DNA of 64,000 nucleotides, taken from assembly GCF_000143415.4 (NCBI RefSeq), contig NW_003314430.1:62001-126000 (forward strand). Reading direction: 5' to 3'. Source of the DNA: Selaginella moellendorffii (lineage: Eukaryota > Plantae > Lycopodiophyta). Below are positions 4,780-44,330 of the stretch, piece after piece. The notes beneath the pieces were generated by a model, which saw nothing but the letters and a program-made list of their open reading frames with translations, was not told the origin of the DNA and made no database searches. The stretch's first letter is position 1, and every line of letters starts with the position of its first letter. Position numbers and translations under genes: made by a program.

Positions 4780-4852
4780 GCGCCTCCTTTCACGTCATGG
4801 GTGATCGACTCACAAGGATGGCTGCCATGAGATTTGCTTGAAGATGGCCACT

Positions 4853-5320
4853 CCATTGCAAGAGATGAAATCCCACACGGGCATCCTCATGGCATTATTG
4901 AAGCACGGGATCCTGGCGACGATTTCTTATGCTCTGCCTGTGTCAGGATGATCATGGCCTATGGGGATTCCGGCAAGTGTGTAAGATGGAGGAGGTCTTT
5001 CACGAGATGCAAGAGAGGAACATCGTCATCTGGAATGGGATGATCGCTGGCTATGCCTTCAATGGGGAACTGGAGAAGGCCAGAGTTTTGTTTGATCTCA
5101 TGCCGAGGTGGGATGTCTCGTCCTGAAACGCTCTCCTTGTGGCTTTTGCACAGCAATACGATGCTCACGGGACCAAGACGGTGTTTGATTCGGGCCTCTA
5201 CACAGCTCGGTCTCCTCAAACGCAAAGATTGGAGATGAAAGACTTCTTTCACCAGATTCTAGCCGGATGTGGTCTCCTGGAACTCACGTCGGATGTTCAA
5301 TCAAACAGCGCCAAGAGCAG
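4853..5320 (+). pseudogene. Degraded, partly inverted fragment of the PPR gene at 41122-42993
   Basis: KMEEVFHEMQERNIV.WNGMIAGYAFNGELEKARVLFDLMPRWDVSS is near-identical to the 41-43 kb PPR, then a TGA replaces TGG, with deletions; 4853-4935 matches that gene in the opposite orientation. Confidence 0.85.
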
Positions 5321-8596: not shown

Positions 8597-10485
8597 CAAA
8601 TTTGAAGAGCTCAATCTTAATCTTAAGATTTAATTTGGAGCAATTAAGTTCTAATTGTAGTCATTTAGATTGATGAAAAAGATACTAACTCTTGAGTTTA
8701 TAAACAATTTCAATATGTCGATGTTAATGCAACAACACCAATTCAACTCATCATTGAAATTCCCACAACCATACTATACAACCAATCCCAAAAAAAGTTT
8801 GAGAAATCATCAAAGCTTCACAATAACAAACTCAAATAATATAAGACCATAAAGAACAATAATGCAATAAAATCTAAAAAATAAGATATAAAAATTGAAG
8901 AAATCAAAACCATGATATTTATCATTTTTAAATGTAAGATATAAAAAGACTTATGAGGACACTCAAAAATCTGCCTATCAAGATTCAAGAAAGAATCTTC
9001 AACTTAGTTCATAATTAAAAAAATCAAGAAAACCATAAACCAATATACTATGGATCAATATTCACACTAAGAAATTTATAGGAAAATAAGATAAAATAAA
9101 GCTTTACATTGGAGACTCATTATTGAGTTTTTCTAGATCTCCCACATCTACTTAAATCAAAAGCACATTTGCCAAAAAATAAAAATAATATATACAAAAT
9201 AAAGTCAATTCAATCGACAAGAGACTATTAATCTTTATACTTTAAAAAATCAAGAAAATCATTAGACTTGAATTCTTTTAAGGATACATCACACCTATTG
9301 GTGTGGCCATATACAAGTTAACTAATAAAGAAATACAAAATGAAACTTGGGCAAAATAACAATAGAGACACTCACAAATACTTAAACTCTTAACGAAATT
9401 AATTTGCAAAAACTACAAGAATAAAAATTTTGAAAACCTATTTCAACAACAATATCGAGGACAAAAACACTTCAAATACAACCACTATTCATCTCAGATG
9501 TTTTAAATATCACTATTGACTGAAAAACACAAATGTTTATAATGTGGATGCGAAATATTGACACAACACAATTAAAAGTATGCCTTGAATACATTTATAA
9601 CAAGGACTTGCAAAAAGAGTAACTGTAATATGCATTCTTGTTTGATTCTAAAGTTGGTAAACAACAACCTTATTGAAAACTGATCAAATTTATGAAGTTG
9701 AGTATGATATAGCAACAAAAACACCAATATACAAGATTGTGTTATTCTATATTACACAATTTTATAACTATATAACATTTACTCTAGAAGAATAAATATA
9801 CCAAGGACTAAAAGACAAAGTCAAGAAAACAAATTCAAGACATTGAATTCAAGAAAGAAAATACAAGATTTTAATAGAATATTGAATATATACATATAAA
9901 CTAACCCAATCAAGATACAAGAATGAAATTAACGACAACAAAAATGAGAAGATAATAGAGGACTTCATAAAACAAAAAAATACTCAAACTCAAGAAGAAA
10001 TCTTTGAGAATATCATTAACAACTACAACAAAATGAATCAAATAATATAAGTAAGAGGAGAAAGTGGGCCACTGAACAAAGAAATGGTGCCAAACTCCTA
10101 AACATAGAGCTAAGGAGTGATGGAACCGGACCACGAAGCAACTCTCGAGCATATAGCCCAAGGCGCTAAGGGACAGGAGCCCAAAGCGACTTGGAACAGT
10201 CTTAAAGCAACTTGCATCCCATTACCATGACCAATATGCAAAATGGAGCCAAACGGAGTTTAGCACTATTTCGACATACCAATGGCCTAACACAAGGACA
10301 TGGGTACTCCATTAGCTAATATGGAGCTAGTATGGAATGGAACTTGGGATTAGACCCGAGTTGGACATAGAATAAGGACAAGCACGCAAGCGAGAGTTAA
10401 ATTATACCTCAAGTTGGTCAAACATGCCTAACCTACACACTATCCATACTATACATTTATAGCCCCCTATAATGCGCCCCCCCCC

Positions 10486-10519
10486 TTCCCCTTCCCCTTC
10501 CCCTTCCCCTTCCCCTTCC
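10486..10519. repeat. (TTCCCC)n microsatellite
   Basis: About 5.5 hexamer units after a poly-C run. Confidence 0.85.
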
Positions 10520-10849
10520 TTGAGGAACATAGTATTAGGAGTTAGTCTTTGGGACAAACTCGAAAGTTATTAAATATTGAATGTCCTAAGATTGTAAATT
10601 TGGACATGGGACAAACACCATTGTGTTTAGGATTTTACATTCCGTAGATGTGCCAAATAAGCAAATCTAGACACTTTTCATAAATAGTATTTGGGACCGA
10701 AATGAAACTAACACAAAAGGCATGATAGCGAAAGTGTTTGGTAAACACAATAAGTTATCATCTAGCAATATTGAGGGACCAAGTTTAATATCACGGGGGG
10801 TTTTGATATTAGCAAATGCAAGCCAATGACACAAGTTTCTCAAACTAGG

Positions 10850-11043
10850 TGTAAGCAACTAAAGAGAACAACTTGAAAGACAATCCATGAGGTTCAAATA
10901 TATAGGGAAAGGGCCCATGAACAAAAGTGCACCCCTTTTTTTAATCGGTTAAAAGTCTTGGGATATTTAAGGTTAAATGTCCTTGGGTTTGAATAGTACT
11001 GGGTTGGGTGACCTCTTGGGAAGTCCAAACTCATGAACTTACA
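10850..11043 (+). mobile_element. 194-bp solo LTR with a 5S rRNA-derived segment (Cassandra TRIM-like)
   Basis: Termini TGTAAG...CTTACA; 10971-11026 resembles the 5S A-box/IE/C-box region (GTTAAGCGTGCTTGGGCGAGAGTAGTACTAGGATGGGTGACCTCCTGGGAAGTCC); absent from the paralogous arm at ~11860. Confidence 0.8.
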
Positions 11044-11091
11044 CCAAACCGAGTATGCTCAACAAGAAACATATAGAGTTCCTACTTTATG

Positions 11092-11523
11092 TGTATCCAA
11101 TTTAAGTACATGATCATTGACTAGTTTCTCAACTAGCTCAAGTGGGAAACTGATAACAGGTCCAGCAATACCAACTTTCTGCCATTGTGGTAGTAAGGAA
11201 AGAATATCCGAAAGAACTAGCCGACAGAATTAACCGACAGATAACTTTCGATATCCGAAGTCACATTCATAATAACCACCCACACTTGATTGGGAGCATG
11301 GGGGAGCTAGAGCTGGCTCTTGGACACTTAACCAAGCTACCCCGTTTGTCAGTCCGTATTCACTCTAGCCTTGGACTTCCCAGTGGTTATCTCATCACCT
11401 AACAGTTGGGTATAGCCTTCCTAAGCTAAACTCCAAACTAGCTCCACTAGGGTACCCCACACTCTCCCTACTATACTTTTGGAACCCCCTGCAACCCCTT
11501 GCAAGAGTTAATCTCTGGTACAA
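11092..11523 (-). mobile_element. Probable solo LTR (~430 bp)
   Basis: TGTA...TACA(A) termini with TTATG on both flanks (11087-11091, 11524-11528); GC higher than flanks; one end is related to 7580-7625. Confidence 0.5.
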
Positions 11524-11814
11524 TTATGAAAACTTATATATTAAATGGTGTTAGATTGTGAATCTAGAAGCAAAAACACTATTTTGTTCAAAACAATTTC
11601 TACATTCCATCAATATGCCCAACTAGCAGATCTAGACACTTTCTATAAATAGCCAATAGGACCAACACAAGCAAAAATGTTTGTCACAAATGTGATTTCA
11701 AGTATCGAAAAATACTTGTCGACAAGTCCTTACGAACACTCTCTCCTTATTGTTATGATGGTAAGAGGTCAATACAGTTAATTCCCTTTATGGTTCCCAC
11801 TTTATTCGTTAATG

Positions 11815-12345
11815 CATGTGAAGGAACTTCTATATATTTCTTGCTGAGCATACTTGGTTTGGTTTGAGAAACTTGTGTCATTAGCTTGTATTTGCTAATA
11901 TCAAGAACCTTACAATATTGAGTTTCCCTCAATATGATTACATGATAGTTTATTGTATTTATTAGACACCTTCATTATCATACCCCATGTGTTGGTCCCA
12001 TTTTAGTTTTATATGCTATTTATAGTGTTGTTCCTAATGTCATTTTATATTTTGTAAGTTTCATGCTTGTCCTAAAAACTAACTCTTAATACTAAGGGTA
12101 AAAGCCCAAAATATGCATTCCTCAAGGAAAAAGGAGGGGGGCAAGGATATGAGAAGGGTCAAATGTATAGTAGAGATAGTGGTTGGAATGAATAACTAAC
12201 CACTTGAGACATTAGTTTAGCTCCCACTAAATTGTGTTGCTCTTTATTCTACTTTTAGCTTAAGTTTAAGCTCAAATTCTATATTGTTTTAGTTGGTGGG
12301 CCACTAATATGTCAAAATTGTGCCAGACACCATTTTGCATGCAAG
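11815..12345 (-). repeat. Dispersed repeat family, copy B (right arm of the inverted repeat)
   Basis: Reverse complement aligns with 10235-11085, minus the 194-bp insert and other indels. Confidence 0.85.
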
Positions 12346-12381
12346 TGTTGAATACACTATTAGCCTAGTTGATCTTGGGAT

Positions 12382-13890
12382 TCATGAAGGGAGGTAACAC
12401 CTATCTAATTCTGGACAGGCCCATTCGAAATCAGGAAAACACATGTCAACAACACCATCCTTGACATTGATCATCACATTAGCATCCCACATATCCCCAT
12501 GAACACGAAAAGCCACATGGCCAATGCAGTTGCCAACTTTCACCTGTGTGCACCTGCCAATGCCCAGAGCACACACAGCCTCATCCTGTCTACCTCAGGA
12601 TGTCCATGCAGTGGCTTCCATCCGTCCTGCACACTTAGGTACTCCATCGTTCACCTCAAGTGTCGTGAGTAGCTGCCAAGCTTTGGCCCACACTTTATGC
12701 ACATAACAGCCATATCGCTGAGCATACTTGGTGACATACTTCTCGCCATCCTGATCAACAACATAAACCCTTTTGTTATGAATCTTGGTCACTTCAGATT
12801 CCACGTTGAGTTAATGATGCAGAGGATAAGGGACTTCGGGCTTCCACAGCTGGTTCCAGCTCCTGCACATGCCAATCTCTGTACAAGTCCCACAGCCTGA
12901 GCAAGCACCTCTTTACAGCGATGCAGATCGTAACACCCTTCTCTGCCATCGGGCAATGGTGGTCTTGGATTGGCACAAAAACGGTCACCGTTAGCGGTTG
13001 ATAGCAGCAGTGGCCATTCCGCCAACCCGAAAAACCAGCCCAACCTGATCAATGACAAATGCCAGATAGCAAGAGCTTTTACCTTTGGTCGAGCCTTGCA
13101 GTGATAAAGCTTGAGGTTGTCCATGGCTTCAATACTTCTCGTAGAAAAGCCTAGCTTTACTTCGACGAGCCCTAGAAGAACATCCGAGATGCTGTCACGG
13201 ATGCCTAGATCCGTACTTTTCGGAGTATTCCGGGAGAAGTTCCCCGTGGACATCTCCTCCTGGACATAAATACCAATGTATCGGTGCCACAAATCGCGCA
13301 AGATGGAAATCATCTTTGACTCGCTCGAGTAGAAAGAGGACGAGGCCTTGGCAAGCCGGCAGTAGAAGTCATAGTCCTCTTCCTTGCATTGGATCGGAAA
13401 TCGGCCATCCACTATGTCGAGGAACAAGCCGAAGACCGGATTCATGAGCTGCAGTGGCAGAGGTGCCGCTGGTAAAGCAGGGTGGAAGTAGTAAACATCT
13501 GGTATCTTGGCCATCTGGGCCCTTCGGACAAACTCCAGGTTGGTGCTCGAAGGGCGATGCAACTTGCCAATGTGGCATCGCATTCATCTTCATCTACATA
13601 GAGACCAGGAATGATTAACGCTACAACAAAGCAGAAGCCATACCTGCTGCCCTGCGGGAAGGAGATCATCATCTTCCAGAACGAACCGCCTGTTGCGTTC
13701 ACAAGATTGAACTTGGACTCCGGCTTTCCATAGCATTCTTGGGGCTCTTTCAGGATCTCAGCCGCTGAGGACCCAGCGCCGTTGATAAAAATCACCTCCT
13801 CAATCTGTATCGAAATAACGGCATATGCTGAGGACGCATATTCTGGGCATATGCCAAGATTTAATGGTTGAGATATAACTAACCACATTG
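12382..13890 (-). pseudogene. Crinkler(CR)-like restriction-endonuclease-fold + kinase gene, disrupted
   Basis: LPLQLMNPVFGLFLD..EDYDFY..SSFYSSE..TDL..LVEVK (PD-(D/E)xK-like); in other frames KYVTKYAQRYGCYVHKVWA and VHGDMWDANVM..DFEWA (kinase catalytic loop and DF motif); pieces are split across frames. Confidence 0.65.
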
Positions 13891-14476
13891 CATTTGTATT
13901 AGCTTACAGACATATTTTATTAACACTTTGGAGCTTGGCCATTTTCTAAAAGTTTGAAAAAACAAGAACTTTAAGCCTTAGAATTTACCTCAAGCATGAA
14001 TTCAACTATGGCCTACATAGGAGGCTGTTAGTGGCCTAAAGCCATGCAAGTATTGACCATTGATGCTCAATCTTTTGCACCTTATCAGGTTGCATCGTGA
14101 TTCACGTTGCCTAGTGTTGCAGTGGGAGGAATGGCACTCACCCACGTGCACAGAAAACGCCAGGTTCACAGCTCTTCGATTTTCTTGCTGGATTGCTTTT
14201 AGAGTGCCATGATTCTTAGCTCTCCAATCTCTTTCTTGCCCCCAGGACACTCTCACGGGATTCTCTGCTGGCGTGTAGTGGCATCATGGGTTGTTCAGAT
14301 CAATGTAAGCGCAAGGAGCTTCTCAAGGAAAATCCAATCTACATTTTCATCCACAACAGCAAGTCTATCTGTCTTGTCATCGTCAACTACATTAACAGGG
14401 TTCTCACATCCATGCGGGCAGACTTGGTTGACAGTGTCCCTTCTTCCAGGTTGATCAAAACCGGCTTACAGATGAT

Positions 14477-15057
14477 AACCGGCTTCCTGGACAACGGCAC
14501 GGTGATGAAGGACTACACCATGGTGCTACAGATGGTCCTCTGGCTGCATCGGATATGTGATCAGAAAAACAGAAGAAAAACTTTGAACTTCACAGAAGCA
14601 GGACGGAAAGTAACCAGTGCAGAGCTGCTGATAAAATGCTGGCTACGCTGGGCGATGATTTCGACTGTCCGATCTGCCTCGCTCATCCTTCTGGAGCCGT
14701 TATCACATCCTGTGCTCACGTTTTCTGCCGGAGGTGCCTCAAGAAAGCACTGTAAGATGAGGACAAAGCTGAGCGAGGACGATATCTTCGCTAGGGAAAC
14801 CAAAGGAGGAAGCAGATGAAGAGCCGTTCAACAAAAACGATGTAGAGGACGAGGATGACAATCCTCGTGAAGGAGTGAAGCCAAGTGCCAAGATCAACGT
14901 GCTGAAAACGAAAAAAGTCATCAAGGAGCCACTCCAAAGGGCCAGTTTCAAGTTCGTCAAGCTCAAGGTCGGCATGAGCGGAAGAGGAGTGGCTGTTCTT
15001 CTCAGCCTCAAGGTCGCTGGAGTGTGACGGCGTCCAACGTTTTCATGATTGATCCAT
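14477..15057 (+). pseudogene. RAD5/HLTF(SMARCA3)-like SNF2-RING helicase C-terminal fragment
   Basis: YTMVLQMVLWLHRICD, GDDFDCPICLAHPSGAVITSCAHVFCRRCL (RING) then a stop, PSAKINVL, LSLKVAGV..TASNVFMIDP; internal deletions and frameshifts. Confidence 0.8.
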
Positions 15058-15116
15058 CAACGTTAGGACGTGCATTGGCTGGATCCGACGGCCCAAAAAG
15101 TTCGGCAACTTGCGCT

Positions 15117-15443
15117 GGCATACGCCATGCGCAACTGCGCATCGCCCTCAAAGATCTTCTTGACGCTGCAAAACTCCCCGCTATGGAGGAGAGATGCCAG
15201 GATGCTCGTCCGAGCGCGCAAGGCATCGTCATCTTTGAATGCAATCACCTCCCTTCCTCCAGAGCCCTGGCGCTGCTGCGCTGTCGGATGAGCTCGCCAT
15301 AACTCCTGGAATCCAAGCTCCGATCATCCTCACGCTCCAAATGCTCCACTATCTCTCGCAGATTCTTCCCAGTCCACAAAGTGCCCGCTGTTGATGGTGG
15401 CGACCCTGGTATACAGCGCCATCCACCTCCTGTTTCGTGTCAT
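15117..15443 (-). pseudogene. Deleted, degraded duplicate of the 5' end of the PPR gene 2659-4779
   Basis: Colinear match to 4249-4798 (e.g. ctcccttcctccagagccctggcgctgctgc, cgctgttgatggtggcgac) with several internal deletions. Confidence 0.88.
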
Positions 15444-15558
15444 CGTAGCCCCAGATCGATCGATTCACGAGGAGCTCGCGGGCAAGGAGACAGGTAGCGT
15501 TTGGATGGCCGCCGCCAAAGCCCTAAACCCTCTTCCTCGAGGCGAGGGAGGAGTGGGC

Positions 15559-17041
15559 ATGGGCGCCAGCATCAGGAGTGGCGCGAGCTTGGCGGCTACG
15601 GGCTACATTCCGCGGAGCTTGCGATCGCAGCAGTGCTCCAGCGCTAGATTCCGGATGCAGCTCCTCGCTCCCACCAGGAATTTAGGTCTTTCCAGCAACC
15701 TCCAGCAGCAGCACCATCCGCTGGAATTCGCGTCTAGCGGCAAGAAGCAAGGATCCTTGTTCTTGGTTCCAAGCACGGGCGATAACTGGAAAGCTCGCAG
15801 TGATCTTCTTCCTTGCCGAGCCATTGCCGAGGAAGAACAGAGTAAGTGTTCTAGTTTTCTTCTTGAATTCCACGAGGAGCGAGCGAGCGGTTTCTTTTCT
15901 TTGCAGTGGCCGATGCCAAAGAAGCTGACACAGCTGCCAGGATCGATGGCAAGGCAATCTCGCAAGCGATCCGGGACGAGGTTGCGCAAGAGGTGGCCAG
16001 GATGAAGAGCGCGCTGGGAAAAGTTCCCGGCCTCGCTGTTATTCTGGTTGGCAGCCGCAAGGATTCGCTGCTCTACGTGACGAGCAAGGAGAAGGCCTGC
16101 GAGCAGGCTGGAATTCGATCCTACAGCGTCAACTTGCCCGACACCGCCACTGAGGCCGAGATCTTGGAGCACGTTCACAAGTTCAATCGTGATCCCGATG
16201 TTCACGGCATCCTCGTCCAGCTTCCACTCCCAAAGGTAAGCAAACTCTCTCTCCCTCTCTTTCGATCTAGCTTTGTTCCATATCTTTGTTCTTGTTCTTT
16301 GTTCCATAGCTACTGGGGCTTGGATTGATCGAGTTATACCATCTTTGCAGCACGTCCGAGAGCAAGAAATCCTGGGAGCCGTGAGCATGGACAAGGACGT
16401 CGATGGATTCCACCCCACGAACATTGGAAGGCTGGCCATGCAAGGAAGGCAGCCTCTTTTCATCCCGTGCACGCCTCGGGGATGTATAGAGCTGCTACTG
16501 CGAACCGGCGTCCAAATCAGTGGCAAGCATGCTGTTGTCATCGGTCGCAGCAACATCGTAGGAACGCCAGCAGCGATGCTCCTTCAGGTTCCACTCTTTT
16601 TCTCCAGTTTTACTCGTTCGTGATCGATTCTTCTTTTTTTTTTTCGGCAGCGTCACAATGCAACCGTAACGGTGGTTCACTCTTACACTCCAGATCCGGC
16701 CGCGGTGACGAGAACTGCGGATATCGTCATTGCCGCGGCTGGAGTGGCTCATCTGGTGCGGAAAGACTGGCTCAAACCAGGAGCTGTGGTGATTGACGTT
16801 GGTATCAACCCAATCGAGGTATGTTCATCCCCGTTTTGGCTTTGAAGTTGAGCTGCCAATGCAGGATCCTTCCGCAAAGAAAGGCCATCGCACCGTAGGT
16901 GACGTCCACTTCAAAGAAGCGTGTAGTGTGGCGTCGGCCATCACTCCAGTCCCTGGAGGTGTTGGACCCATGACCATCGCCATGCTCCTCCAAAACACTG
17001 TAGAATCGGCCAAGCGGGCCTATGAATTCAATGGAACTTAA
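15559..17041 (+). CDS. FOLD: Bifunctional methylenetetrahydrofolate dehydrogenase/cyclohydrolase, probably organellar (multi-exon)
   Basis: [74 protein letters not shown]; transit-like N-terminus; alternative ATG at 15505. Confidence 0.95.
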
Positions 17042-17115
17042 GCGGCTAGCAAAGTAAGTCTCGAGTCTCGCCAAAAATGAAAGTTTTGGATACAAAGAAA
17101 CGTTTTACATTTATG

Positions 17116-18544
17116 CTATGCAAGGAATCGGCCATCCCGAAACATCACTTTGAGGATTCTCTTGAGATTAGGAAGTACATGCCTGGGACCAGCGCTGGCT
17201 GTCTCAAAGCGATCCAAAATTTGCTCCAGATCCTATGATCAAAACAAAGAGAAGACGAAGAACACTGTCAATGCCAACTTAGTTTGGATGGAAAGAAACG
17301 AGACCTTGTTTAGAAGAAAGACTGCATAAGCCGCCCTCGTAGGCTCTTGGCCATCTGAAAAAAGAGGGAACTCAACTAGCTGATTCTCTACAGCCGGCAA
17401 GACAATGGCACCACCGCTGGTTGACGGCTCGGTCGGAGGTGAAGGATCTTGGATGTAAGATCGAGAGGCTCGGTATCTCACGGGGTAGCGAAGCCGGATG
17501 TCCAGGAAGCGAGACAACAGGGAGAGCATCTGCGAGCAAAGCTCAAACTAGTTTAGAAACTCCCACGAACTTTGTGATCTAGAAGCTTTCACGACCTAGC
17601 TCGTTGCAAATCTCTGAAAAAGGAAGAAAAGAATACTGCTTACATGAGCGACGTGTCCGAGTGCTGTGGCCGATGTTTCGTACTCTCGCTTGTCGGTGAA
17701 GAGCGCGGCTTCCTTTTTGACAGGAGCAATGACGTGCAGACCCGAGATTGTAAGTGGAACGCTGTCACCTTCGCCTGTGCACAAGTCATGAAATCTACGG
17801 AGATCGAGCAAGACTTTTGCGAGTACCTGCATGAGCAAGAGGCGGACACTTCTTCTCGTTTGTGCATGGAATGAGTGGATACAAAGCAGCAACTTGCGCA
17901 GCCATGGCACGCCTTCGAACAGTGAGAAGCCCCTTGAGACGAGCAAGTCTGCCATAGCCACCATCACCAGACAAAAGCTTCTGGGCCTCCTGGAAAAAGA
18001 GAGAAAACTTGTGGACGAACACACGAGCAAGCAAGATAAATACCTGCAATCGAAACTGCGCTGCATTCAAGGATCTAGCTGCGTGAAGCAAAGAATTCCC
18101 CGACAACGCCAACTTGTCCCTGGCATCCTTGAGCTGCTGGTTTTTTTCTTCCAGAGAGGACGTCGAATCCTCCACCGCTTTTCGCCGGAGTTCCACCTTC
18201 TTGTGTAGAGATTCCAACGCGTCGATCCGTTTGAGCTCGACCAAGTTCACAGTCTGTGAGAGTAGAGTACGTCACTACTTGAGAAAAAGAAAAATCTAAG
18301 AACTTACTTCCACAAGAGTCTCGAGCTTGCGAGCGGCGGATTCCTTGGATGCGCGGGCTTTGGAGAGGAGAGTGGCGAGGCCGCAGAGACGAGCGAGGGA
18401 GTTTTCGTATTCTTCCCATTGGAAGAGCTGGGGAGGAGGAGAGGGCTTCTTCTTCTTCTCACCGTCCTCGCTGGCGTCGGCGAGTCCGAGCTCCGAGCAG
18501 CACTGCGTCAGCACGGTGGCCACCGAATCCTCCACCTTGTCCAT
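17116..18544 (-). CDS. VPS38: UVRAG/VPS38-like PI3K complex subunit (multi-exon)
   Basis: Coiled-coil N-half; FTDKREYETSATALGHVAH, LRYPVRYRASRSYIQD, EFPLFSDGQEPTRAAYAVFLLNK|DLEQIL..GPRHVLPNL. Confidence 0.85.
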
Positions 18545-18591
18545 GCGATCCACTCCCGCCTCATCTTTCCAGCATCTGGAATCTGGATCAT

Positions 18592-18599
18592 AAACCCTA
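18592..18599 (+). promoter_or_regulatory. Telo-box AAACCCTA upstream of the VPS38-like gene
   Basis: Exact motif ~50 bp upstream of the ATG; exact copies also at 59233-59240 and 34397-34404. Confidence 0.5.
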
Positions 18600-20353
18600 G
18601 GCTAGGTAGTTACCTAATTCTTTCGTTTTCTACTGCAAGGTAAGCCATCGAGTCTAGAACCGAGAGAAATGATATATTCTGGGCGATTGATTCAGTCGAA
18701 AAAGCACTGGTGCTCGTCTATCTAATTGTTGGGAGAATCCAAGTCTAATAGCCACCGGTCACGTCACCAATCGCACTAGTGTAGTGACTCAAAGCTATGC
18801 ACCAAGGAAGAACTTTGGTTCAGAACTGGAGAGTTTTTTGTGGCAAAAATCCAAGTCCAAAAACATCGAGCTTGTTCTTGATGATCCAGTGATCTAAACA
18901 TGTCAAGGGTGCCAGCAGGATGATAAAAATCAATACACAGGCAGCACAAGTAACATCACAGGTATCAGGTGACCACGTCTAAAGGCAACTTCCACAAGAG
19001 TCGGAGACCTTGCAAACACAATTGGACAAGGGTGATGGCAAAAACTTCCCTTCTGGACAACATGTCTTGGTATTGACTCTGCTCAATGAAAACCCATGTC
19101 CCAACACATTTCAATGGTGGCTCCATGGATCACGATCAAAAGTTCCACTACTACCTTTCCACAGTCAACACTGATTGGACAATTGGGTTGACCGATGTGA
19201 TGGAAACATTGCAGAATTTTAGCAATACAGAACAGGCCAGCACCATTTTCACTCTGAGGTCGGCAATTGGGACACATGTAAAATGCCGTGGGAGGGACGC
19301 ATCTGCTACTTAAGCGTGATTGAAATTGTTTAACACTTCATCCAAGATTGCAACTTCTGCTTCAATGGCAAATAATAACATGCCTCCTCAATGAACTGCT
19401 GGCTGTATTGGAGAAACACTTGAAGTGTGGTTTAATCCACATGGCAGATGATGTGGATAGTAATATCTTAGATGGCAAAATTTAAGAAATCTTTGGGATT
19501 CTGGAAGAGAATCAAGAGCCGGGCAGTTTGTACAACAATGGCATTGCAAAGATTTAAACATTGCAGTTTGTTAGTTCATCCTGAATCAATCATCTCAACA
19601 TCTATTTGGTGAACTACATTGACTTCTATTAACTCGAGCTCAACTTGTGAATTGAGCTCAAAACCAACAACCCCAACAAATAGCCTTTATCATCTTCTCA
19701 AAAGCTAGTGTGAAGTGTGCATTGGATGAAGCCTTTCTTTCTCGAGAATGTGAGCTTGTTCAAACTGTTCAGCCAGTATGCTATTGCCTTCTGTGAGAAC
19801 AATCACAAGAGATAGAGAGCTTTTCTTCCTCCATTAGTTTGTCATAGTCTTCTCTTGGTGCTGCGGCATTTGCATGCTCTCCTGTGCTTGATTTTTGGCA
19901 TTATCTCATCCGTGTCAATGAGATTTCTTGAACGAATGGCCCTATGGCTTGATTGGAACTTGTTGATGGTATCAAATAGATCCTAGTCTAAAGCTGGTAG
20001 TTTGAACTTCTTAACAGTACCCAAATAGACGGTTTTTTGAAGGAAGAAAATGAGAGATGAGAGTTCTAAGCCCGAGTGTCCACAAGGCTGTCACGATTTG
20101 GGGATCACTCTTCTTGTTGAACACTGTTATCCAATGTCCACACACAAAATGAAATCCTCGTTAGAAAGGTTATGTCAGTGCTACTCACTCTCGTCTCTGC
20201 GCTCTCTTTTGTGTTGCAGGCGATTAGCACCTGGCGAGAGAGAGTCCAGGTCGCGACCAAGTTTGGCATCACGAGCCAGGTGTTCATGAATCATCTGGGG
20301 CACCCTATATAATTCCTTAGGGCCAGGGATAATGCGAGACTAGAGTGGAAGGC

Positions 20354-23046
20354 ATGGGTCCGCCGCGCCATGGATCTGGAAAAGAGTCAGGCCTGCAGCT
20401 CCGGAGAGGCGATGAGCAGCGCCTTGTTCCTCAGGAGAAAGCCGCCGCATCTTCAGGGCTGAGAAAGCGGAAAGCGGCTGAAGAATCAGCGGCCGCAAGA
20501 GAAAAGAAAAGGTTGCAATCTATAGTAATCCAAATGGTCCACGAGAAATCTCCTGGCAGGATTATGGACTTGGCCATGAAGATGCTCGAAGGTACGGTTT
20601 GTTTTTCATTCCCAACTTCAAGCTAGTTCTCACGATACAAACAAAAAATAACAGGTCCAAAACCAATGCCACATTCAGAGACTTCTGAAGAGACTGAAGA
20701 TGATCCGGGAATCGTTGAGAGAGCGTTTCAAGGGGAGTATCGGACTGTGGGGGGAGTAGACAACGTTGATCTCTTGCGTCAGAAGATTGAAGAAACAGGA
20801 ACATCCTGGGTTGCAAAGAATCGGATAGCACCTGTCGTTACTCTAGTGCAGTCGAGTGGCTGGGGAAAGTCGAGGACTATCTGCGAGCTTGCAAGTCGAG
20901 GTGTGTTCGTGGTTTACTGCTCCTTTGCATCTGCCACCACTACTTACCCGCCAAGGTCTGCCATTGCGGACTTCTTCTACACAAGCGCCGTCAGGCTGCT
21001 CAGCTCGGGTTCTCGGCTTGTGTCAGAGAGCAGGTTTATGCTCTTCTGCATGCACTACTTCTCGTCGTGCATCGATGTCGCCGTGGACAAGCAGTTGGCG
21101 GCAGAGGACTTCCTGCAGGAACTAATGCTTGGAGAGGAATTCTGGCGTCTAGTGCAGGCCAAGATTGAGAGTCGACAAAAACAGTGGGAACGCCGCTATC
21201 CTGCACTTGAAAAGGTACTGCTGGAGGAGCCTAGTAGAGCGAGCAATGTCTGGGGCGCATGGGAAGATCGGGTACATCGGCGAATGCGGAATACCGACAA
21301 ACTGAAGCAGTTACCGGATCCTCCCAAAGGAAAACTCAAGGTTTTGTTTGTCATGGATGAAGCTGGATGGTTTGGCAGGTGTGATGATCATCGAGCTTTT
21401 GCTGCATTTGATCCTGCAAGAAGGGCTGCCAGGCTGTTTCCAGGGACTGGAGAGGTCGTTGCCTTATATACAGACACCAACGATTTTGCTGGGAGCAATG
21501 TTGCACCTCCGTGTAGGCCGCACAGCAGCGACCGAGTAGCTGCACATGGAACGGCAGTATCACATCCAGCGTACTGCTTTTTCGCGGCACACTCACCGTC
21601 AGACACAGGAACAGGTAGCCTTCCGCTTGGCAAAGTGGAAAATCTTGGTCGTCTGGTCGCTTATGGTCGGCCGCTCTGGCAAGCACTGTTAAAGGCTAAA
21701 GGAGATCCTCAGGAGGTATTAACTCTGGCTGTCGACAAGCTCCTTGGCGGCGCTAATTCGCTCAGCAAGTTTGTGGAGCAAGGTTTTATGTTGGAAGAGG
21801 CTCCTTTGGCCATACTTGGCTGCAGGGTGTGCCTCGACATCAACCCTCAGGCCAGAGTTGTCTCTGGCTTGGTTGCGAGGCACCTGCTTAGCGTGGTGTC
21901 TATCTCTGACGACCGGGAGCATGTTTGGACGGATTGGGCCGTCGAGCCAGTGGTTGCAGCGGCTGCAGCAATGGCTTTGCGTGCGGGGCGAAAGCGGACA
22001 GGGTGGCAATACTGTCTCGAAAAACTTGAGGACGGGCTGATGCGTGGCTGGGTGGTTGATCGAGGTTACCGGGGCGAGCTTGTTGCACGAGTGCTGCTAT
22101 TACTCGCAGTGGACAGTCTGCAGAAAGATGCATGGAGGTGCTTCACTTTTGACGAGCTATGCCGTGGCCTTTGCGGCACGTCGGTGTCGGATCTCAGAAA
22201 AGCAGAGCTGGGAGTGGAGGACGAGGAGAAGGGCCGTAAAAATGTGGGTGACGCCAAGTTCCTTTGCTTGCAGTTCAGGAAAACGGACATTCCACTGAAG
22301 GAGCTCACGGCAGAGAATCTGCTTGCATTTGGAAAGGCGGGTGTTGGCATTATTTGCAGTGGAGGCATAGACATTATCATCGTAGGCTTTTTCGGTGGCA
22401 CGTTCAGCTTGGAGACGATGACCGCCATTCTGGTGAAAGTGAAGAGGACGAAGACGCTAGGCAACTTGGATTTGGCATATGCTAAATGTAGCCCGGAGTT
22501 TTCTGGGATGGTGGCTCTACTCGAGGTACCGTACGTGAGCTTGCTCGTGAATGTTGCTGACAGTTCCAGTGACGAACTTGGAAACTCAGAACGACAAAGC
22601 GTCAGTTTCAAAACTGGGAAACTCGTTAAAGCGGCATTAATGAAGAAGATGCCTGCAAATGTTTCGATGGGAGTGGCACTCCAGGAAACACACCCAAATT
22701 GCGAAGGTGTCGAGCTATGGGGAAAGGAGAAAGGAATGTCGTCCAGGAGCAAAAGACGTTCTTTACGGAATGTCGAGGCATGGAAACGATATTTTACTCC
22801 GGTTGATGACGATCTCCAACACATTGTGGCCATTAAAGGTGCGTTTTCTGTTGTTCTGTTGACAGTCACATTGTTTTTTCCGCAGGTTTGCAGGCATTCT
22901 CATCCAGGGACCAAGTGAAACGCCTGGTTGACATTACTCTGAAATCCACTCCAGGGATGAGGCGGTTAGAGGAGAGGAGTCAGAAGATATGTGCAGAGAT
23001 GATGTTTAGCCTTGTCAGAAAGAGAAAACTGCGAAACAAAAGGTGA
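20354..23046 (+). CDS. Crinkler(CR)-like P-loop NTPase + REase-fold protein (3 exons, apparently intact)
   Basis: TLVQSSGWGKSR (Walker A), VLFVMDEA (Walker B), YGRPLW, EPVVAAAA, GYRGELVARVLLLLAVD, GIDIII..AILVKVK; introns ~20592-20655 and ~22839-22885; basic NLS-like ends. Confidence 0.72.
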
Positions 23047-23805
23047 TGATAGTTGCTCTTACACTACTCTGTAAGGAGTCTATATTTCTCTTGACGATAT
23101 TATTTGTGCAGTGGCTGTCACAATATATACTGCTCCAAATTCTGGAATGTCGCTGGCTTGCATCTTTTTCAAAAGGAGGCAAGAAGAACTTATTTGACTA
23201 ACATAAAAGTTTGTTCTGGCCATGGTCGTCCATGACAAACTTGATCTCCAGTGCACCACAGCAGTGTGAACATAAAGAAGAATCTGTAGTAGAGAAAAAG
23301 AAAAGGAACAAGTTAGCAAAGAACCAACAAAACAATTTTACAAAAAAAATTGTTGTAACACACAATACATGCTTTTTAAATTACTGTCAACCATCGACAG
23401 ATTAATTAGCCCTTACACCCTAAGTCAATTGGCTAAAGATCTTTATTTTATTATCTTAACCTGGTGCTTAATAATCTTCCTTTTGCTAGGGAATAATCTG
23501 CAATCATATTTAAATCACCCTTGGTCACTATAGTCTTTCTCTTATAGTTTACCAAATTTTAGTTCTCCCTCTAGATCCATTATGTTGAATATTTCTTTAA
23601 AATATTTTTGCCCCACTCGTTAGCCATGAGAATCAAATCTAACTTTGATTACACCTTAAGTCAATGGTAATCACTACATTGCAAAGCTTTTTCTTTATTT
23701 TATTATCTTGACCTGATGCCTAATATTGGGGGTGGTGATCTGCTTTACGTCAACACTTTCACAGTAATTCTTCCTTAATCCTTTCTAGCTTTCCATGCGT
23801 ATGTT

Positions 23806-23891
23806 TAAGCCCAGAGGATATTCCGTCGCGGCGCCATTGATTCCAATATTCCAATGGCGCCATTGATTCGACTAAGCCCAGAGGATATTCC
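23806..23891. repeat. A-B-B-A short direct repeat patch
   Basis: taagcccagaggatattcc x2 (23806, 23873) enclosing ggcgccattgattc x2. Confidence 0.85.
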
Positions 23892-25363
23892 AAAGAATAA
23901 ATTAAAATATACAAATTTTAAATGCTGCATATTAAAGATCTAAAGCCCATTTGAAACATTAGATTTGGGCTTAAACATGAATGACTTTAGATCGATTGAC
24001 CGTACACAGAAAGGCTAATCCTTCGAGGCTAAGCTCGAAGAATTCATGATATGAATCGTGAAGTGGATTTAAGAGCCATTCTCGTTTAAATTTCTAGGCA
24101 AAGAAGAGCTTCACCACAATGCAATTGCTCTGTGCGTAAGGATTTGACATTCTTTTCTTCGCGTTTCAGGTCACAAAAACACTGAGCTGAAAGTGTATGG
24201 AGGTGAATACTACAGGTTTGTGATTGCCTTCTCTTGCTCTGGCTAGAACTCACGTTCTACCGATACAACATCGAATGGAAGCTCCTCCGAAGAGGCTAAG
24301 CTATATGCCTTCAATTTCGTTTTTACTTCGTTTCTCGACTAACAAAAGATCTCTTGAGACTAGATTTTAAATCAAAATGTAAGATAAGATGGATATAAGA
24401 TGGATGAACACAGGCTCTTTTGTTCTATTTTCTGGACCTTATTACACGCTGAAGGTTGGCTGTTTGTAGACATCTGTAATAACCTGGTTAAACATTTGTA
24501 TGTTTGCCGTCGCGAGTGGAGTTCCAAAAAACTACCTCATGGTGATCATTGTGGGAGCAGCAGTCCAGGCCATTGTGCTGCTTATTCTACACCATTAAAA
24601 AGTTCGCCCACTTCGTCCAAAACGTTCTATGGTTGTAGAATTAGTGAAAACATAAAGAAAAGCGCATGAAAATGTTACAGTAAAGGCACCCCTTGACCTC
24701 ACCAATGGAAGAAAATAAGTAAGCATTTCGGTAAGGGGAGAGGGAGAATCTGTAATGTAAACTCTAGGCGAGACGCAAAGCACGAAGAACACTGAGAAAG
24801 TTCTCCCACTTAAGGAGATCGCCTGCCCTAGCTAAATCAAAGAGAGAAGAACTCAGATTCGCCTTTTCTCAGCCAAATCGTCGCAAGCTCTCAGTGGTGT
24901 CAACGTATCGGCTATCGCTTGATGCGAAGACCACGATCATCAAACTCACAAGACTTGGATTGCGCTGATTTTTTGTCGAATCATCACCGTTCCTGGGCAA
25001 GAACAAGGGCACTTCCACGGGGGAGAAAACCAAACTCGCTCCTGCCCATACCTCCTCGCCATCGAAATCATCTTTGCTGCGAGATCGCGTCACAAAAAAG
25101 GCAAGACAGGAGGTACCAATCGATCATCCCACGCCGCAAGAACAGGGCATCAGACTTAAACTAATGAGCGTAGAGGAGCCCTACCAGGGACGGCCGAGAT
25201 TAAATCACTGATCCAACGGGCACGATCTCTTATGTCGTTTAGCCCAGATTAACAAAGTTGAGAAGGTTTACCAGCAACACAGTCAATGGCGCTGACTGGA
25301 AATTGAAATTTGACTGCCCAGTCAAATAAATAGTGTGCGAGGATCCGGAGCGTGATCACGAAA

Positions 25364-26047
25364 ATGGCTCATGGAAATCTCTCCTCGCTGCCGCCACTGC
25401 TGCTTATTCTCATTTCTTCCTTGGTGATCTTCTCATCCCGCGCTGCCGATCCCGATCCAGCGCAGGATTATTGCGTCGCAAACGTCGAGCTCCCGCTGCG
25501 AGTGAATGGCTTCACTTGCAAGCCCGAGGTCACTCCGCTCGATTTCGTCTCCTATCTCCTGCGAGAGCCCCCGAATCCCACCGCCCTGGAGAACAATCGA
25601 CTGGGTTCCATCGTCACGCAGGTGAACGTCCAGAGTTTCCCGGGGCTCCACACCCAGGGCCTCTCGATCCAACGCTTCACGTACGCCCCCGGCGGCGTGA
25701 TTCCTCCCCACGTCCATCCCCGGTCCTCGGAGCTGCTCTACGTCCTCCAGGGAACGGTCGTGGCGGGGTTTGTGACCACGGACAACCGGCTGTTCCAGGC
25801 GACGCTGGAGCCCGGCGACCTCTTCATCTATCCCAGAGCTCTCATCCACTTCTCGGTGAACACGGGCGAGACGCCGGCGCTGGCGATCGCGAGCTTCAAC
25901 AGCGCCAATCCGGGCACGGCGCTGCTGCCCAACGCGCTCTTCGCGTCCGTGCCCGTGCTCCCGGCCGCGGTGCTCGCCAAGACGTTTGCGTTGAGCCAGA
26001 GGGTCATGGAGAGCTTACGGCTCGCATTGAGGAGCATTCTAACCTAG
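25364..26047 (+). CDS. Germin-like protein (cupin)
   Basis: Signal peptide, DPDPAQDYCVA, NGFTCK, FPGLHTQGLS, PPHVHPRSSE, PRALIHF, FNSANPG. Confidence 0.95.
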   Translation: MAHGNLSSLPPLLLILISSLVIFSSRAADPDPAQDYCVANVELPLRVNGFTCKPEVTPLDFVSYLLREPPNPTALENNRLGSIVTQVNVQSFPGLHTQGLSIQRFTYAPGGVIPPHVHPRSSELLYVLQGTVVAGFVTTDNRLFQATLEPGDLFIYPRALIHFSVNTGETPALAIASFNSANPGTALLPNALFASVPVLPAAVLAKTFALSQRVMESLRLALRSILT

Positions 26048-26229
26048 CTAGTAGCAGTAGCAGTAGTGATCTATCGATTCTCTGTCGCGATTATCTACAT
26101 CGATCGATCGATCCATTCGTGCTTTGAATTTAAATTTGAAAGGTCTTTTCCTAATAGAATACCCTTGGGTTTGGAAAAGGCTGGCGGATAGGTCGCGCTT
26201 CTTCGAAAGATGCCAATGTTTTGTCTCGC

Positions 26230-28265
26230 AGGGAAATCAGTGTGATCAGGGAATATCTATCCTCATCAGAGGACGTCAAAGATGACATAGTCCACATCGA
26301 AATGACGAACAACGAGGGAGCGCTGAAGGGCACTGTTCAAGTCAGTCGCTGACAAGGCGTTTGAGGTGCTTGAGGCGGCAAGGACGCGTGAGCGTGAGCG
26401 TGAGGCGGAGGCGGCAGCAATAATCAGTAAGTTCCTCTTCTTGCTCGTGTATTTCGGTCTCATGTCGATTCTTCCGCGTGAGCAAAGCTCGTACTTGGAC
26501 TTGGAAAATGCGCATCAGAATGATGGGAGGATTGTGACAGTCCAGCACGCCATCTCTGGGAGCACGAAGCGATACTCAGTGATGCTGAAGTCGGGCCGGT
26601 TGCTGCAAGGAACGTCCGAAAGCTCCTCACGAACCTACGGGCCGACATCGAGCGCCACGCTAACTGCTGGCAAATCCGTCAGTGCGTTCGGGAGCCGGAT
26701 GACTCCTGCAATGATCTCGTCTACCAGGATGCAGCACGACTGGTAGTCGGCCACTGTACCACGCAAAATGTTGACATGCACAACTTCACAAAGTGCTGCC
26801 GGTTCCAAAGGAACAGACTAGCAAGATCAGCGGCAGGCGACAGCACCTTACCTGACTTCGCTATTGGCATCGTCCAGCCGGCCATGGTGGTATCGACTAA
26901 TGCTTACGAGTGGTGCGACATCTACGTGGAGTTCAAAAACGACGAATCCAAGCTTGCTGAGGGGTGTGGCCAGGTTCTGGATAGGGCAGAGAAGCGCTGG
27001 AAAGATGCTTGCGCCAAGAAGAAGGTGGCGTTGGGTGGTGTGTCTACAGGCAAAGATCTATTACCTATGGTCGTATTCACAGATGCAATTGTCGGCTCTC
27101 ATGTTGTCAAAGGTGTCAGGTGGAGCTTGGAAAGTGATGGAGCCGCAGGTGTGACACCAGGAGTGGTGCATGTGGATAGTTTGGCGCTGCCGGAGCTCCT
27201 CTTCCAGATCTTCTGTGCCTTGCACTTTTCCAGCAGATGTTTCACCATGAAACCAGGAGCTGGCATTCCAAAGCTGGAGCCTTCCCACTCATACAAGGAG
27301 AAGTATGTCGTGCGGTCTGATTCAGGCGAGATATGGGAGCTAGAGCTCGTCCACACGTACATGGACTTCCTCTTCCGCGGGGGCTGCTATTTGGTTCGGT
27401 TGGATGGCAGCAAGCAGCAAGTGGTGCTCAAGCGAGGCCCATGCAGTCGGTCAAGTGTGCAGCTGAAGGATTTGGTCTTCCAATTGAGCTCTTCAGCCAG
27501 GTTGAGAATGAGATCCGCGTTCGGGAGGTTCTGGCTGCCAGTGGATGCAAGATCAGGATCCCCGAGATTCTGTAGTCAGGCACGGCTTTACAGCCGTTTG
27601 GCTGGAGAAACTGCCCGATCGTGCTCATGAATTACGTTGGTGAATCGCTACACAGCAAGACGCTTCCTATCCGGGACGCCGCCAAGATGGGAGCTAGCCT
27701 GCCAATCCCAAAGTCGAGAAGGTGGAGCCGCTCCAAACCAACTCCTTGCTCGCGGTAAGCAACGTTCCTGGAGCTGATGTCTCTATGGATTATCTCCCGC
27801 TTGTGCAGATCCAGCACCGTCTCCACCGTGATTTCCTCGGACAATGGTGGTAGCGTGGGAAGCAGCTCTGTCAAGGACCTGGAGTTTGGCTCCATGAACT
27901 CGGTGTTGGGCAACAGCGTTGACGCTTCAGCGGATCTGGAGGGCATTCTGTATACGATGGTAAAGGTGGCCGGGATGGATCTGCCGTGGTCGACTGCTGC
28001 GCAGGAGGAGGACGAGGACTTGGTGGTTACCATCCGGCGCCAGGTGTTGGACCAGGGCTTCCTTGCGAAGCTCAAGGAGCCCCTCTTCAATCAGTTGCAA
28101 CAGGCAGTGTTCAACGTCCGCCCTGATGTTCCTTCACCATATGATCATTTCCATTGTCTAGCCTCTAAATCTCCCGGCTCGCCCCTGCTCGCCAAGACGT
28201 TTGCATCGAGGCAGAGGGTCATGGAGAGCTTGCTGCTTGCATTGAGGAGCATTCTAGTAGAGTAG
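26230..28265 (+). pseudogene. Crinkler(CR)-like REase + protein kinase gene with a premature stop and internal inversion; 3' end fused to a duplicated germin tail
   Basis: PDFAI..DIYVEFK..GCGQV (REase); VVLKRG|VENEIRV; TAG at 27573-27575; HRDISSRN..LLDFG on the minus strand within 27702-27826; DLEGILYTM..LPW on plus. Confidence 0.75.
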
Positions 28266-28317
28266 TGACCAATCGATCCTATCCATTCATGATGCTGTTT
28301 GAATTTAAATTTGAAAG
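28171..28317 (+). repeat. Direct duplicate of the germin 3' end and UTR (25958-26142)
   Basis: tgctcgccaagacgtttgc..cagagggtcatggagagctt..gcattgaggagcattcta..tttgaatttaaatttgaaag present in both. Confidence 0.92.
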
Positions 28318-28545
28318 AACTTTCAACGACTATAGAGAGGAATTAGGGTTCTTGCAATGTCGCAGCTAGAACGACTGTGTCTTTGGCGATGGCGGGCCTT
28401 GGATCGCTCTTTTCAACATCTAGAAGCTGGTGAGGAAGATTCATCGTCGCAGCGCAAATGAATCCCACGCAACAAGCTCGTGAGCGGCCGGCCCTCGCCA
28501 TCATCTTTCTGTGCTCGCCCCAAATTTCGTCGCGGCGAGCTCGAG

Positions 28546-42993: not shown

Positions 42994-44330
42994 GAGAGTT
43001 CTAAACCGTGTTCCTTTTGCAAGTGGCAAATATGCCAAAAATTGTATAAATGTTAATATGTTCTGTTTTAGATCTTAGGGCGCCCACCTTGCTAGATTTA
43101 TTGCTGACCTTGTCAAAGGTCTAGCAAATGTACGAAGAACAACTTACTCGTGAACAGTCGTGTAAACAGTGGAGTGATAATGGAGAGATTTGGAATGATC
43201 CCAGCTCGGGGATCTTGGATCTTGGACCTTGGTGTTACGTACACGACAAGCGATGGGAATTTGTGGGCTTGGCCGTGCGTACGGAAGCAAAAGCAAAGTG
43301 TTTGATGCCTAATCGAAGATGATTCTTTCAATAGCCGAGCAAGGTGGCGGGGATCCATAAGTTGGCGCAAGTTTCCGAGGCGCGCAAGCTAGCATCGACG
43401 CTTCGTGGACACATGGACCGTATCAAACACTGCTCAAGATTTTTTTCCTCGCGAGTTACGTGGCACCACTCAAGCGCAGCACATCTAGATCTTCTGGAAG
43501 TTTAATTAACTCAGACACGAGCCATAGTTAATCTTTTATTAACGAACTAGAAATTAAACTAGAGGCTCGGGCATTTGGATTGGCCGCGACTGTGTTGCCA
43601 TTGCTCGAGTGACTTGATCAGAGTTTTCAAGGTTTTGTCGCGCTGATTATAGACGAGGTCTTTGTGTGGTGCTCACGGGTGACGTGACGTGACGGGCGGG
43701 ATCCTTGGGTTGCGACGGGCCACAAGCGCGTCAACGCTTCACAAGCACAGTGCCACCCGTCAATCTCCCAGCCACTCTACCTATATGGGCACGCATCACC
43801 CCCACCATTTCTCTTCGTCTCTCTCTCTCTCCTCTCTCGCGCTAGTTCTTCCTTGGCTTTTCTCGCGATCGGTGCCTTCTCTGGGCGATTCTCTTGAATC
43901 TGGCAGCTTAATGCTGCCGCGGGGACGATTCGCGAGCGCGCGAGCTTCCCGAAGATTCCACTCTAGGTCTGGCGGCGCTTTTCTTTCTTCGATCGAGCAT
44001 TGAGGTATGAATACCTTCTTGTGCTTGGATTTCTTCTCTCTTTCTCTCTCTCTCGTGCTAATTCTTGCTTTGGCTTTGTTTTCCAGAAGTTTTGTACCAG
44101 CGGCTAGCTTAGAGCTACATTATTTTTCTCCGCGTCCCGCGAAAACAGTGTTTTTTTCTTCTTCTTCTTCTTCTTCCTCTATTGCCTCTTTTGTGGAAAA
44201 TAACAAAAGAGTCCGTTTTGTGGGTGCGACTTTGTGGATCATTGACTCTGGGTGGAGATCAAACTTATCCCTTGTGCAAGTGTCTTACATTTTCTTTCCC
44301 AAAAAGGCTTCCAAGTTCCAAGCACACACC

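Follow-up and report, generated by a model that had tools for sequence, protein, structure and literature searches.

Why should three genes of conflict-type architecture lie within 16 kb of one another among the conserved genes of a plant? The question is raised by a stretch of 64,000 nucleotides (the window) of Selaginella moellendorffii scaffold GL377734.1, record positions 62001-126000. It holds two relics that join a nuclease motif to a kinase (genes 1 and 3, the former tentatively) and, between them, a gene for a P-loop NTPase joined to a PD-(D/E)xK-like nuclease (gene 2). The original prediction read all three as Crinkler-type genes, two of restriction endonuclease (REase) and kinase and one of NTPase and REase, which might spread as cargo-bearing selfish or defence units in a mobile effector system. 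The observation is largely real; as for the domains, the reading of gene 2 is right, that of gene 3 good and that of gene 1 tentative. It is somewhat probable, in our judgement, that the locus records old passive insertions made through break repair with copied filler DNA and followed by decay, with gene 2 as a living gene, and that it is not an active mobile system. What it holds is members of two ancient eukaryotic "conflict" gene families that have reached widely different stages of life.

The gene order in the window is PPR, gene 1, MTHFD, ATG14, gene 2, germin, gene 3, patatin and legumain, which bears out the claim that three non-housekeeping genes are placed between conserved plant genes. 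Such a placement is true of any gene here, because the genome is gene-dense. The three genes are as follows.

12385-13903, minus strand: gene 1, a relic in three frames with stops
20354-23046, plus strand: gene 2, the annotated gene SELMODRAFT_431787 (protein P0001, 860 amino acids), with three exons
26237-28180, plus strand: the gene 3 unit, delimited by its homology to the paralogous locus L002 on GL377673.1 (blastn against L002 9554-11436)

A second copy of the region, L004 on GL377649.1, is collinear with the window for more than 30 kb, with an identity of 91-98%, and most likely represents the other haplotype. The 2011 v1 assembly of Banks and colleagues is said to hold both haplotypes of S. 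moellendorffii.

Gene 2 is a living, expressed and selectively constrained plant gene. RNA contigs of two runs, which come from different studies (X6 and X7), skip its 47-nt intron exactly as annotated. Its allele in the other haplotype has an intact open reading frame (ORF), with a dS of 0.0475, a dN of 0.0198 and a dN/dS of 0.42. In the window, a 750-codon ORF at 20666-22918 is 100% identical to SELMODRAFT_431787. The protein consists of a basic, coiled-coil N-terminus, a P-loop NTPase and a PD-(D/E)xK-like nuclease, and its key elements are located as follows.

20852-20875, plus strand: Walker A, SSGWGKSR (P0001 residues 146-153), with G150 and K151 invariant in the 20- and 36-member family alignments
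21341-21364, plus strand: Walker B, VLFVMDEA (P0001 residues 309-316), with D314 and E315 invariant in the family alignments
22064-22447, plus strand: nuclease-like core, with E554 (GYRGELVARVLL; GYRGELVAR), D652 (GGIDIIIVGF) and ILVKVKR
22837-22883, plus strand: intron of 47 nt, GT..AG, with the RNA joint 22836>22884

Both Walker motifs are present, and by its sequence and predicted fold the NTPase belongs to the AAA+/STAND-like class; a YGRPLW block is also conserved in the family alignment. In the putative nuclease, E554 and D652 are nearly invariant across that alignment, and the helix-strand-strand-strand-helix-strand order of the core is visible in the AlphaFold2 model. This model, which was built from 36 sequences, reached a pLDDT of 79 and a pTM of 0.80; its residues 1-94 are of low confidence and include one long helix. 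The strand that reads IQVK in the family consensus reads ILVKVKR in gene 2 and its allele. Because a lysine here replaces the catalytic glutamine, nuclease activity of gene 2 is uncertain.

The relationship of gene 2 to the CR (Crinkler-RHS) effectors was apparent at the level of both sequence and predicted fold. Clusters in AlphaFold-DB match the model at 1e-20 to 1e-28, and the gene 2 NTPase aligns, with an E of 2.7e-20, to residues 231-685 of one entry, A0A2N1MAR9 ("Crinkler effector protein N-terminal domain-containing"). In the Atlas, gene 2 scores 0.99 to Basidiomycota clusters and 0.89 (201 of 256 features) to a Mucoromycota cluster in which PF20147 occurs in 19% of the members. Because these matches lead to proteins that bear the Crinkler header, gene 2 is assigned, on sequence and model comparison, to the same NTPase-REase toxin module as the CR effectors, and the Crinkler-type reading of this gene is borne out. 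The header itself, the ubiquitin-like domain PF20147, was not found in gene 2 by Pfam (E<=0.1). A direct reading of the N-terminal 110 residues of P0001 showed a basic, charged stretch that has neither a hydrophobic leader nor an LFLAK-like motif. Apart from a sub-threshold AAA_22, no Pfam family matched gene 2 or 19 of its relatives at E<=0.1. Among solved structures, the nearest to the NTPase are Avs3 (Z 8.7 over 286 residues), RFC, ORC, other AAA+ proteins and plant NLRs, with Z between 7 and 8.7. All Foldseek matches of the gene 2 model in the PDB had E>1e-3, and the whole-model search gave a weak, low-TM match over the full length to AddB (E 6e-3).

The family to which gene 2 belongs is large and old. 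At least 20 Selaginella gene models share 50-60% identity with it, several to a scaffold, and a profile search of 1.84 billion representative sequences recovered 3744 relatives at E<=1e-3. Those with names come from Adiantum ferns, Selaginella, Basidiomycota (Imleria and Laetiporus) and the chytrid-grade Sorochytrium, and many others are unnamed metagenomic eukaryotes. In a quick maximum-likelihood tree with long branches, whose careful search is unfinished, Selaginella and Adiantum form one group (SH-aLRT 89; inner group 100), and a second Selaginella subfamily is sister to sequences of Adiantum nelumboides with a support of 99. This tree suggests that gene 2 lies within a lycophyte and fern clade inside a large, mostly fungal family, and that at least two lineages of the family predate the split between lycophytes and ferns.

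Within Selaginella, comparison of the paralogous loci indicates that the NTPase-REase family expands through tandem and segmental duplication within DNA rich in transposons. The DNA around four such loci (L006-L009) is poor in genes and crowded with Ty3/gypsy pieces. One of them, L009, carries two NTPase-REase genes (9670-13307 and 16675-20276) in a 7-kb tandem unit at 94.6% identity, and each gene is preceded by a gypsy integrase piece and a long terminal repeat (LTR). The duplicated unit includes transposon DNA, because the integrase piece and the LTR precede each gene; the same layout is seen in L008 and in part in L006. A 440-bp element that flanks NTPase-REase paralogues was considered as a target duplication and rejected, as it is a gypsy LTR following integrase ORFs.

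The two relics are of a different kind. Gene 3 is a pseudogene in both haplotypes, and each copy is broken in its own way. Its parts are the following.

26776-27630, plus strand: ORF of 284 codons with LPD...(20 aa)...EFK, a PD-(D/E)xK-type motif
27086-27273, plus strand: about 187 bp that are missing from the other haplotype (blastn against L004)
27703-27825, minus strand: kinase catalytic loop (HRD...DFG) in a 123-bp piece, inverted relative to the other haplotype and L002

The LPD...EFK motif is kept in the paralogues P0023 and P0024. The ORF that carries it has Atlas leads of 0.86-0.90 to Pkinase_fungal, DUF6826 and SPOK2_N clusters, and no Pfam or profile match. A kinase N-lobe follows in another frame, and the C-lobe later runs into a copy of the germin gene. 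The copy in L004 reads the kinase as a single ORF of 324 codons, which matches Pkinase at E 1.8e-7 (31.2 bits, with a cut-off of 31.7), TTBK1 at 5e-7, PknB at 8e-6 and Pkinase_fungal at 0.0014 (below its cut-off); the inverted piece in the window matches Pkinase at E 7e-5. By these profile scores gene 3 carries a true protein-kinase domain. In the predicted combination of REase and kinase, the kinase half consequently stands, and the REase half is suggested by the motif and the Atlas leads.

The decay of gene 3 proceeded independently in each haplotype and involved frameshifts, the 187-bp deletion and the 123-bp inversion. L004 reads HRN and EFI where the window reads HRD and EFK, and its nuclease-motif part is in another frame. 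Because each allele has its own stops, frame changes and lesions, both are regarded as pseudogenes. The inversion that had been predicted in this segment is real: L004 holds the 123 bp in the opposite orientation with base-precise breakpoints, and L002 is collinear with gene 3 except for this piece. An assembly artefact was ruled out by an independent contig of a 2024 DNA run, which covers 27480-28118 with 2 mismatches and crosses both breakpoints. Locus L003 holds two partial, reordered pieces of gene 3 type, and the idea that it shares the inversion of the window was rejected, as its piece is an isolated 63-bp fragment with unrelated flanks. Small inversions recur in this family of relics, since L002 has a micro-inversion of its own, of about 70 bp (10773-10837, in the alpha-C region of the kinase), with breakpoints at the palindromes CAATTG and GATC. 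The same locus also contains a hairpin-type inverted duplication with 38-nt arms at 10348-10432. L002 sits among retroelement gag and protease ORFs, and all copies of the gene 3 unit that were seen are broken. RNA support for gene 3 consists of a few short, low-depth contigs from one run only, and a word-index homology search with it found only two Selaginella fragments.

Gene 1 is likewise a pseudogene in both haplotypes and is more decayed than gene 3. Two parts can be distinguished.

12792-13583, minus strand: nuclease-motif ORF of 264 codons, TD...(15 aa)...EVK
12385-12810, minus strand: kinase-like N-lobe and catalytic loop (HGD...N...DFE)

The reading frame shifts twice after the nuclease-motif ORF. 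The kinase-like stretch, VYVVDQDGEKYVTKY ... HGDMWDANVMI ... DFEWA, contains a stop, and its C-lobe is missing after the DFG-like motif. It matches Pfam kinase-clan families at a sub-threshold E of 0.012-0.12. In the embedding-based Atlas, gene 1 scores 0.97 to unnamed fungal clusters with a restriction-endonuclease-like fold, and the model of one of these clusters is similar to HSDR_N as well as to N-termini found in Pkinase_fungal and Crinkler-header proteins. These motifs and leads make gene 1 a likely relic of a nuclease joined to a kinase, with the kinase truncated, so that the predicted REase and kinase architecture holds tentatively. An AlphaFold2 model with the allele as sole alignment partner had a pLDDT of 28.7. 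The allele (P0202, at L005) is also fragmented, with a DNA identity of 85%. A word-index homology search with gene 1 found only itself, and no similarity between genes 1 and 3 was detected by BLASTP or by profile comparison (probability 0.7%). Part of gene 1 is covered by the annotated 161-residue model SELMODRAFT_431784.

Do these genes behave as mobile units? An empty site was looked for in the second haplotype and was not seen there: genes 1 to 3, the island around gene 1 with its repeats, and both germin copies are all present. Comparison of the ends of the gene 3 unit with L002 revealed neither terminal repeats, inverted or direct, nor poly(A), and the unit contains no transposase, reverse transcriptase or recombinase ORF. 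No flanking direct repeat was found at L002. No relic related to gene 1 or 3 lies within 10 kb of the four NTPase-REase loci L006-L009, and the reverse comparison was also negative. These results do not uphold the idea of a cargo-bearing mobile or defence unit, as there is neither an empty site nor termini nor a transposase and genes 1 and 3 are dead in both haplotypes. They are also unfavourable to the idea that the cluster is a system, since the clustering is not repeated at five other paralogous loci.

What remained of the mobile model was the claim that integration leaves long flanking duplications, and that the segments of the two kinase genes each end in a degraded copy of the neighbouring host gene. 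For gene 3 the latter is correct. The sequences concerned are these.

25352-26047: germin ORF, unannotated, with a Cupin_1 match at 2e-42
25958-26165, plus strand: copy A, the last ~90 bp of the germin coding sequence and ~120 bp of the 3' untranslated region
28171-28330, plus strand: copy A', a degraded direct copy of A with two deletions, present in both haplotypes

Copies A and A' are 88-92% identical (self-BLAST E 1.9e-22). A ends about 70 bp before the left end of the gene 3 unit, and A' begins at most 10 bp from its right end, where the homology to L002 stops. This arrangement has the geometry of a target duplication around an insert and would be harder to derive from a decayed germin tandem. 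Gene 3 is the one clean case of such a duplication; L002 has none, and in the self-comparison of the window no repeat was found to flank gene 2.

At gene 1, the corresponding repeats lie too far out to be assigned to the gene.

2659-4779, minus strand: ORF of the PPR gene
4304-4798, plus strand: left copy of a repeat from the 5' end of the PPR gene (self-BLAST)
15148-15443, plus strand: right copy of this repeat, which lies about 460 bp upstream from the start codon of MTHFD and also occurs in the other haplotype
4898-5283: two oppositely oriented pieces, together a scrap of the PPR gene at 41122-43038

The two copies of the repeat are 77-91% identical and 10.8 kb apart. Between them lie the PPR scrap, AT-rich transposon DNA, a solo LTR and gene 1. 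The repeat bounds a composite island of 10 kb and cannot be tied to gene 1. The gene scraps reported for the insertion-like segments do exist, in the form of the scrap at 4898-5283, which was copied from 41.6-42.2 kb. The solo LTR of the original prediction is a 194-bp element at 10850-11044 with several copies in loci L003, L005 and L007 at 74-88% identity, which makes it a dispersed repeat.

These observations can be accommodated by break repair with filler DNA. Gene 3 may have been copied as filler DNA into a break in the 3' end of the germin gene, and fill-in of a staggered break, by about 150-200 bp on each side, would have left the direct target duplication around it. Gene 1 would lie within a composite island in which filler scraps and transposons accumulated between PPR and MTHFD. 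Repair of this type would explain the bracketed gene 3 unit, the PPR scraps in two orientations and the lack of transposon hallmarks. There are precedents for both steps in plants, namely gene movement by filler-DNA repair that uses synthesis-dependent strand annealing (Wicker et al. 2010, cited in PMC3445842) and tandem duplications that arise at staggered breaks (Vaughn & Bennetzen 2014, cited in PMC7407515). The locus resembles these cases in that a foreign gene copy stands at a non-collinear place, without transposon hallmarks and bracketed by a target duplication, and in that the adjoining scraps are copies, in both orientations, of a gene close by. It differs in that a duplication of 150-200 bp is here tied to a 2-kb insert, and the event is old.

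The closeness of the three genes would, on this explanation, reflect an insertion-prone region and not a working three-part system. The region is indeed structurally unstable. First, the other haplotype lacks a 972-bp insertion at 23269-24240; the junction is clean, and no target duplication is obvious. The portion of the insertion at 23440-23723 is a genome-wide repeat with a DNA-run depth of 10-30x baseline, of which one copy lies in L008 (14688-14996), 1.4 kb downstream of an NTPase-REase paralogue. Second, a 5-kb insertion specific to the other haplotype (L004 4599-9635) begins 325 bp upstream of gene 2. Five exon-like pieces of the gene at window positions 62257-63857 lie within it, with the introns shortened or removed (annotated as a gene of 153 amino acids), and it has neither LTRs nor a long flanking duplication. 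Third, the interval between ATG14 and gene 2 is about 55 kb longer on GL377649.1 than at window positions 18.6-20.0 kb, and the segment of gene 1 is 85% identical between the haplotypes compared to 97-98% further right. Large haplotype-specific differences are known in Selaginella (PMC5750206).

Several points weigh against the filler-DNA explanation. It is drawn from geometry, and from a single cleanly bracketed insertion. The only two non-transposon direct repeats within the 64 kb both surround a nuclease-kinase relic, which is odd under pure chance. The DNA-run depth of 3-6x baseline over 26.8-27.4 kb suggests a few more copies of the gene 3 unit at >=90% identity. Finally, the micro-inversions, in the 123-bp piece of the window and in L002, are not explained by repair of this kind, and template switching is the default guess for them.

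The flanking repeats could also be remnants of local tandem duplications of the germin and PPR genes, which were later mostly deleted or overwritten and had nothing to do with the arrival of the relics. Tandem duplicates are numerous in S. moellendorffii (PMC5750206), and PPR genes are plentiful here. The island of gene 1 opens with PPR scraps and has a PPR gene next to it, and a cupin gene also occurs 10 kb from L002. We nevertheless consider this origin unlikely, as the ends of the duplicated segment match the ends of the gene 3 unit, which would need a coincidence, and no other germin-like sequence lies between A and A'.

The model of the original prediction, in which the nuclease-kinase units, and perhaps the NTPase-REase genes, mobilise or once mobilised themselves as selfish elements and the wide staggered cuts of their own nuclease give target duplications of 100-500 bp, draws on some of the same facts that trouble the repair explanation. 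The gene 3 unit is multi-copy in unrelated contexts (the window, L002, L003 and the raised depth), a target duplication of 150-200 bp brackets it, and both non-transposon direct repeats in the window enclose a nuclease-kinase relic. In addition, SPOK genes are selfish drivers on a giant transposon in Podospora (PMC6660238, PMC8092012). However, no termini, recombinase or empty site was found in the comparisons above, all copies seen are broken, no duplication flanks L002 and no repeat flanks gene 2. Genes 1 and 3 also show no detectable relationship to each other, and the repeats of gene 1 stand 10.8 kb apart around a composite island. Self-mobilisation at this locus is accordingly rated as quite improbable.

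A bolder form of this idea has a slim chance of being correct. It would hold that, in the lineage of Selaginella, nuclease-kinase genes of SPOK, FunK1 or CR type were once active selfish elements of toxin-antidote or homing-like character, which spread by provoking breaks whose repair with an element copy left long target duplications; that the expanded, expressed NTPase-nuclease family is an immune or genome-defence system of the plant from the same conflict; and that the micro-inversions mark a specific process of inactivation or repair. That all three genes work and are inherited together as a single defence or effector system, like a defence island, is hardly credible: three conflict-type architectures within 16 kb would be unlikely under random placement, but two of the three are pseudogenes in both haplotypes, none co-occur within 10 kb at L002, L003 or L006-L009, and genes 1 and 2 are about 62 kb apart in the other haplotype.

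Two further observations concern the neighbourhood. The best-covered RNA within the 6 kb examined is an unannotated transcript at 24417-25150, represented by a 615-nt RNA contig with 0 mismatches; its intron of 62 nt (24474-24535) has GT..AG ends on the minus strand. As it has no ORF of more than 90 codons, it could be either a non-coding RNA or a gene with a small ORF. Exact-protein look-ups gave no record for the germin ORF or for P0016.

Compared to known systems, the genes of the window show several likenesses and differences. First, the C-termini of CR effectors combine a P-loop NTPase with an REase or an REase with a kinase (Zhang et al. 2016, as reported in PMC5289972 and PMC12957317), and CR-like proteins have already been reported in land plants (PMC5289972, PMC12957317). 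Both architectures appear to occur here, and the NTPase module of gene 2 resembles that of the CR effectors in sequence and predicted fold. However, gene 2 has no Crinkler or ubiquitin-like header, signal peptide or LFLAK-type motif, and carries the change from Q to K in its nuclease motif. CR effectors are secreted by pathogens, whereas the genes of the window are the plant's own intracellular genes with introns.

Second, the relics recall the SPOK spore killers of Podospora, in which a PD-(D/E)XK nuclease kills and a kinase protects (PMC6660238), and which can ride on a giant transposon (PMC8092012), as well as FunK1 (PF17667). The likeness lies in a nuclease motif followed by a divergent kinase in one reading direction, and in the presence of SPOK2_N and Pkinase_fungal clusters among the Atlas neighbours of both relics. 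The difference is that Pfam gave no SPOK2_N match and Pkinase_fungal remained below its cut-off, and that the plant copies are broken, with no evidence of drive.

Third, the best solved-structure match of the gene 2 NTPase is Avs3, a prokaryotic immune protein of the STAND/AAA+ type. Avs proteins pair an NTPase with a nuclease effector. The match has a middling Z, with a different order of domains, no sensor repeats seen and no sequence similarity. By analogy, gene 2 might act as a nucleotide-switched nuclease or DNA-binding protein in a genome-conflict or immune role.

Collectively, no new mobile system is revealed at this locus. What it does offer is a dated, haplotype-resolved picture of gene death, with frameshifts, a deletion and a precise inversion of 123 bp, and, in gene 3, a single clear case in which a long target duplication encloses a gene copy. 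Modules of the Crinkler type have been studied mainly as weapons of oomycete and fungal pathogens. Here, a vascular plant keeps an expressed and constrained NTPase-nuclease in a clade that it appears to share with ferns, and plants therefore seem to hold old copies of their own.

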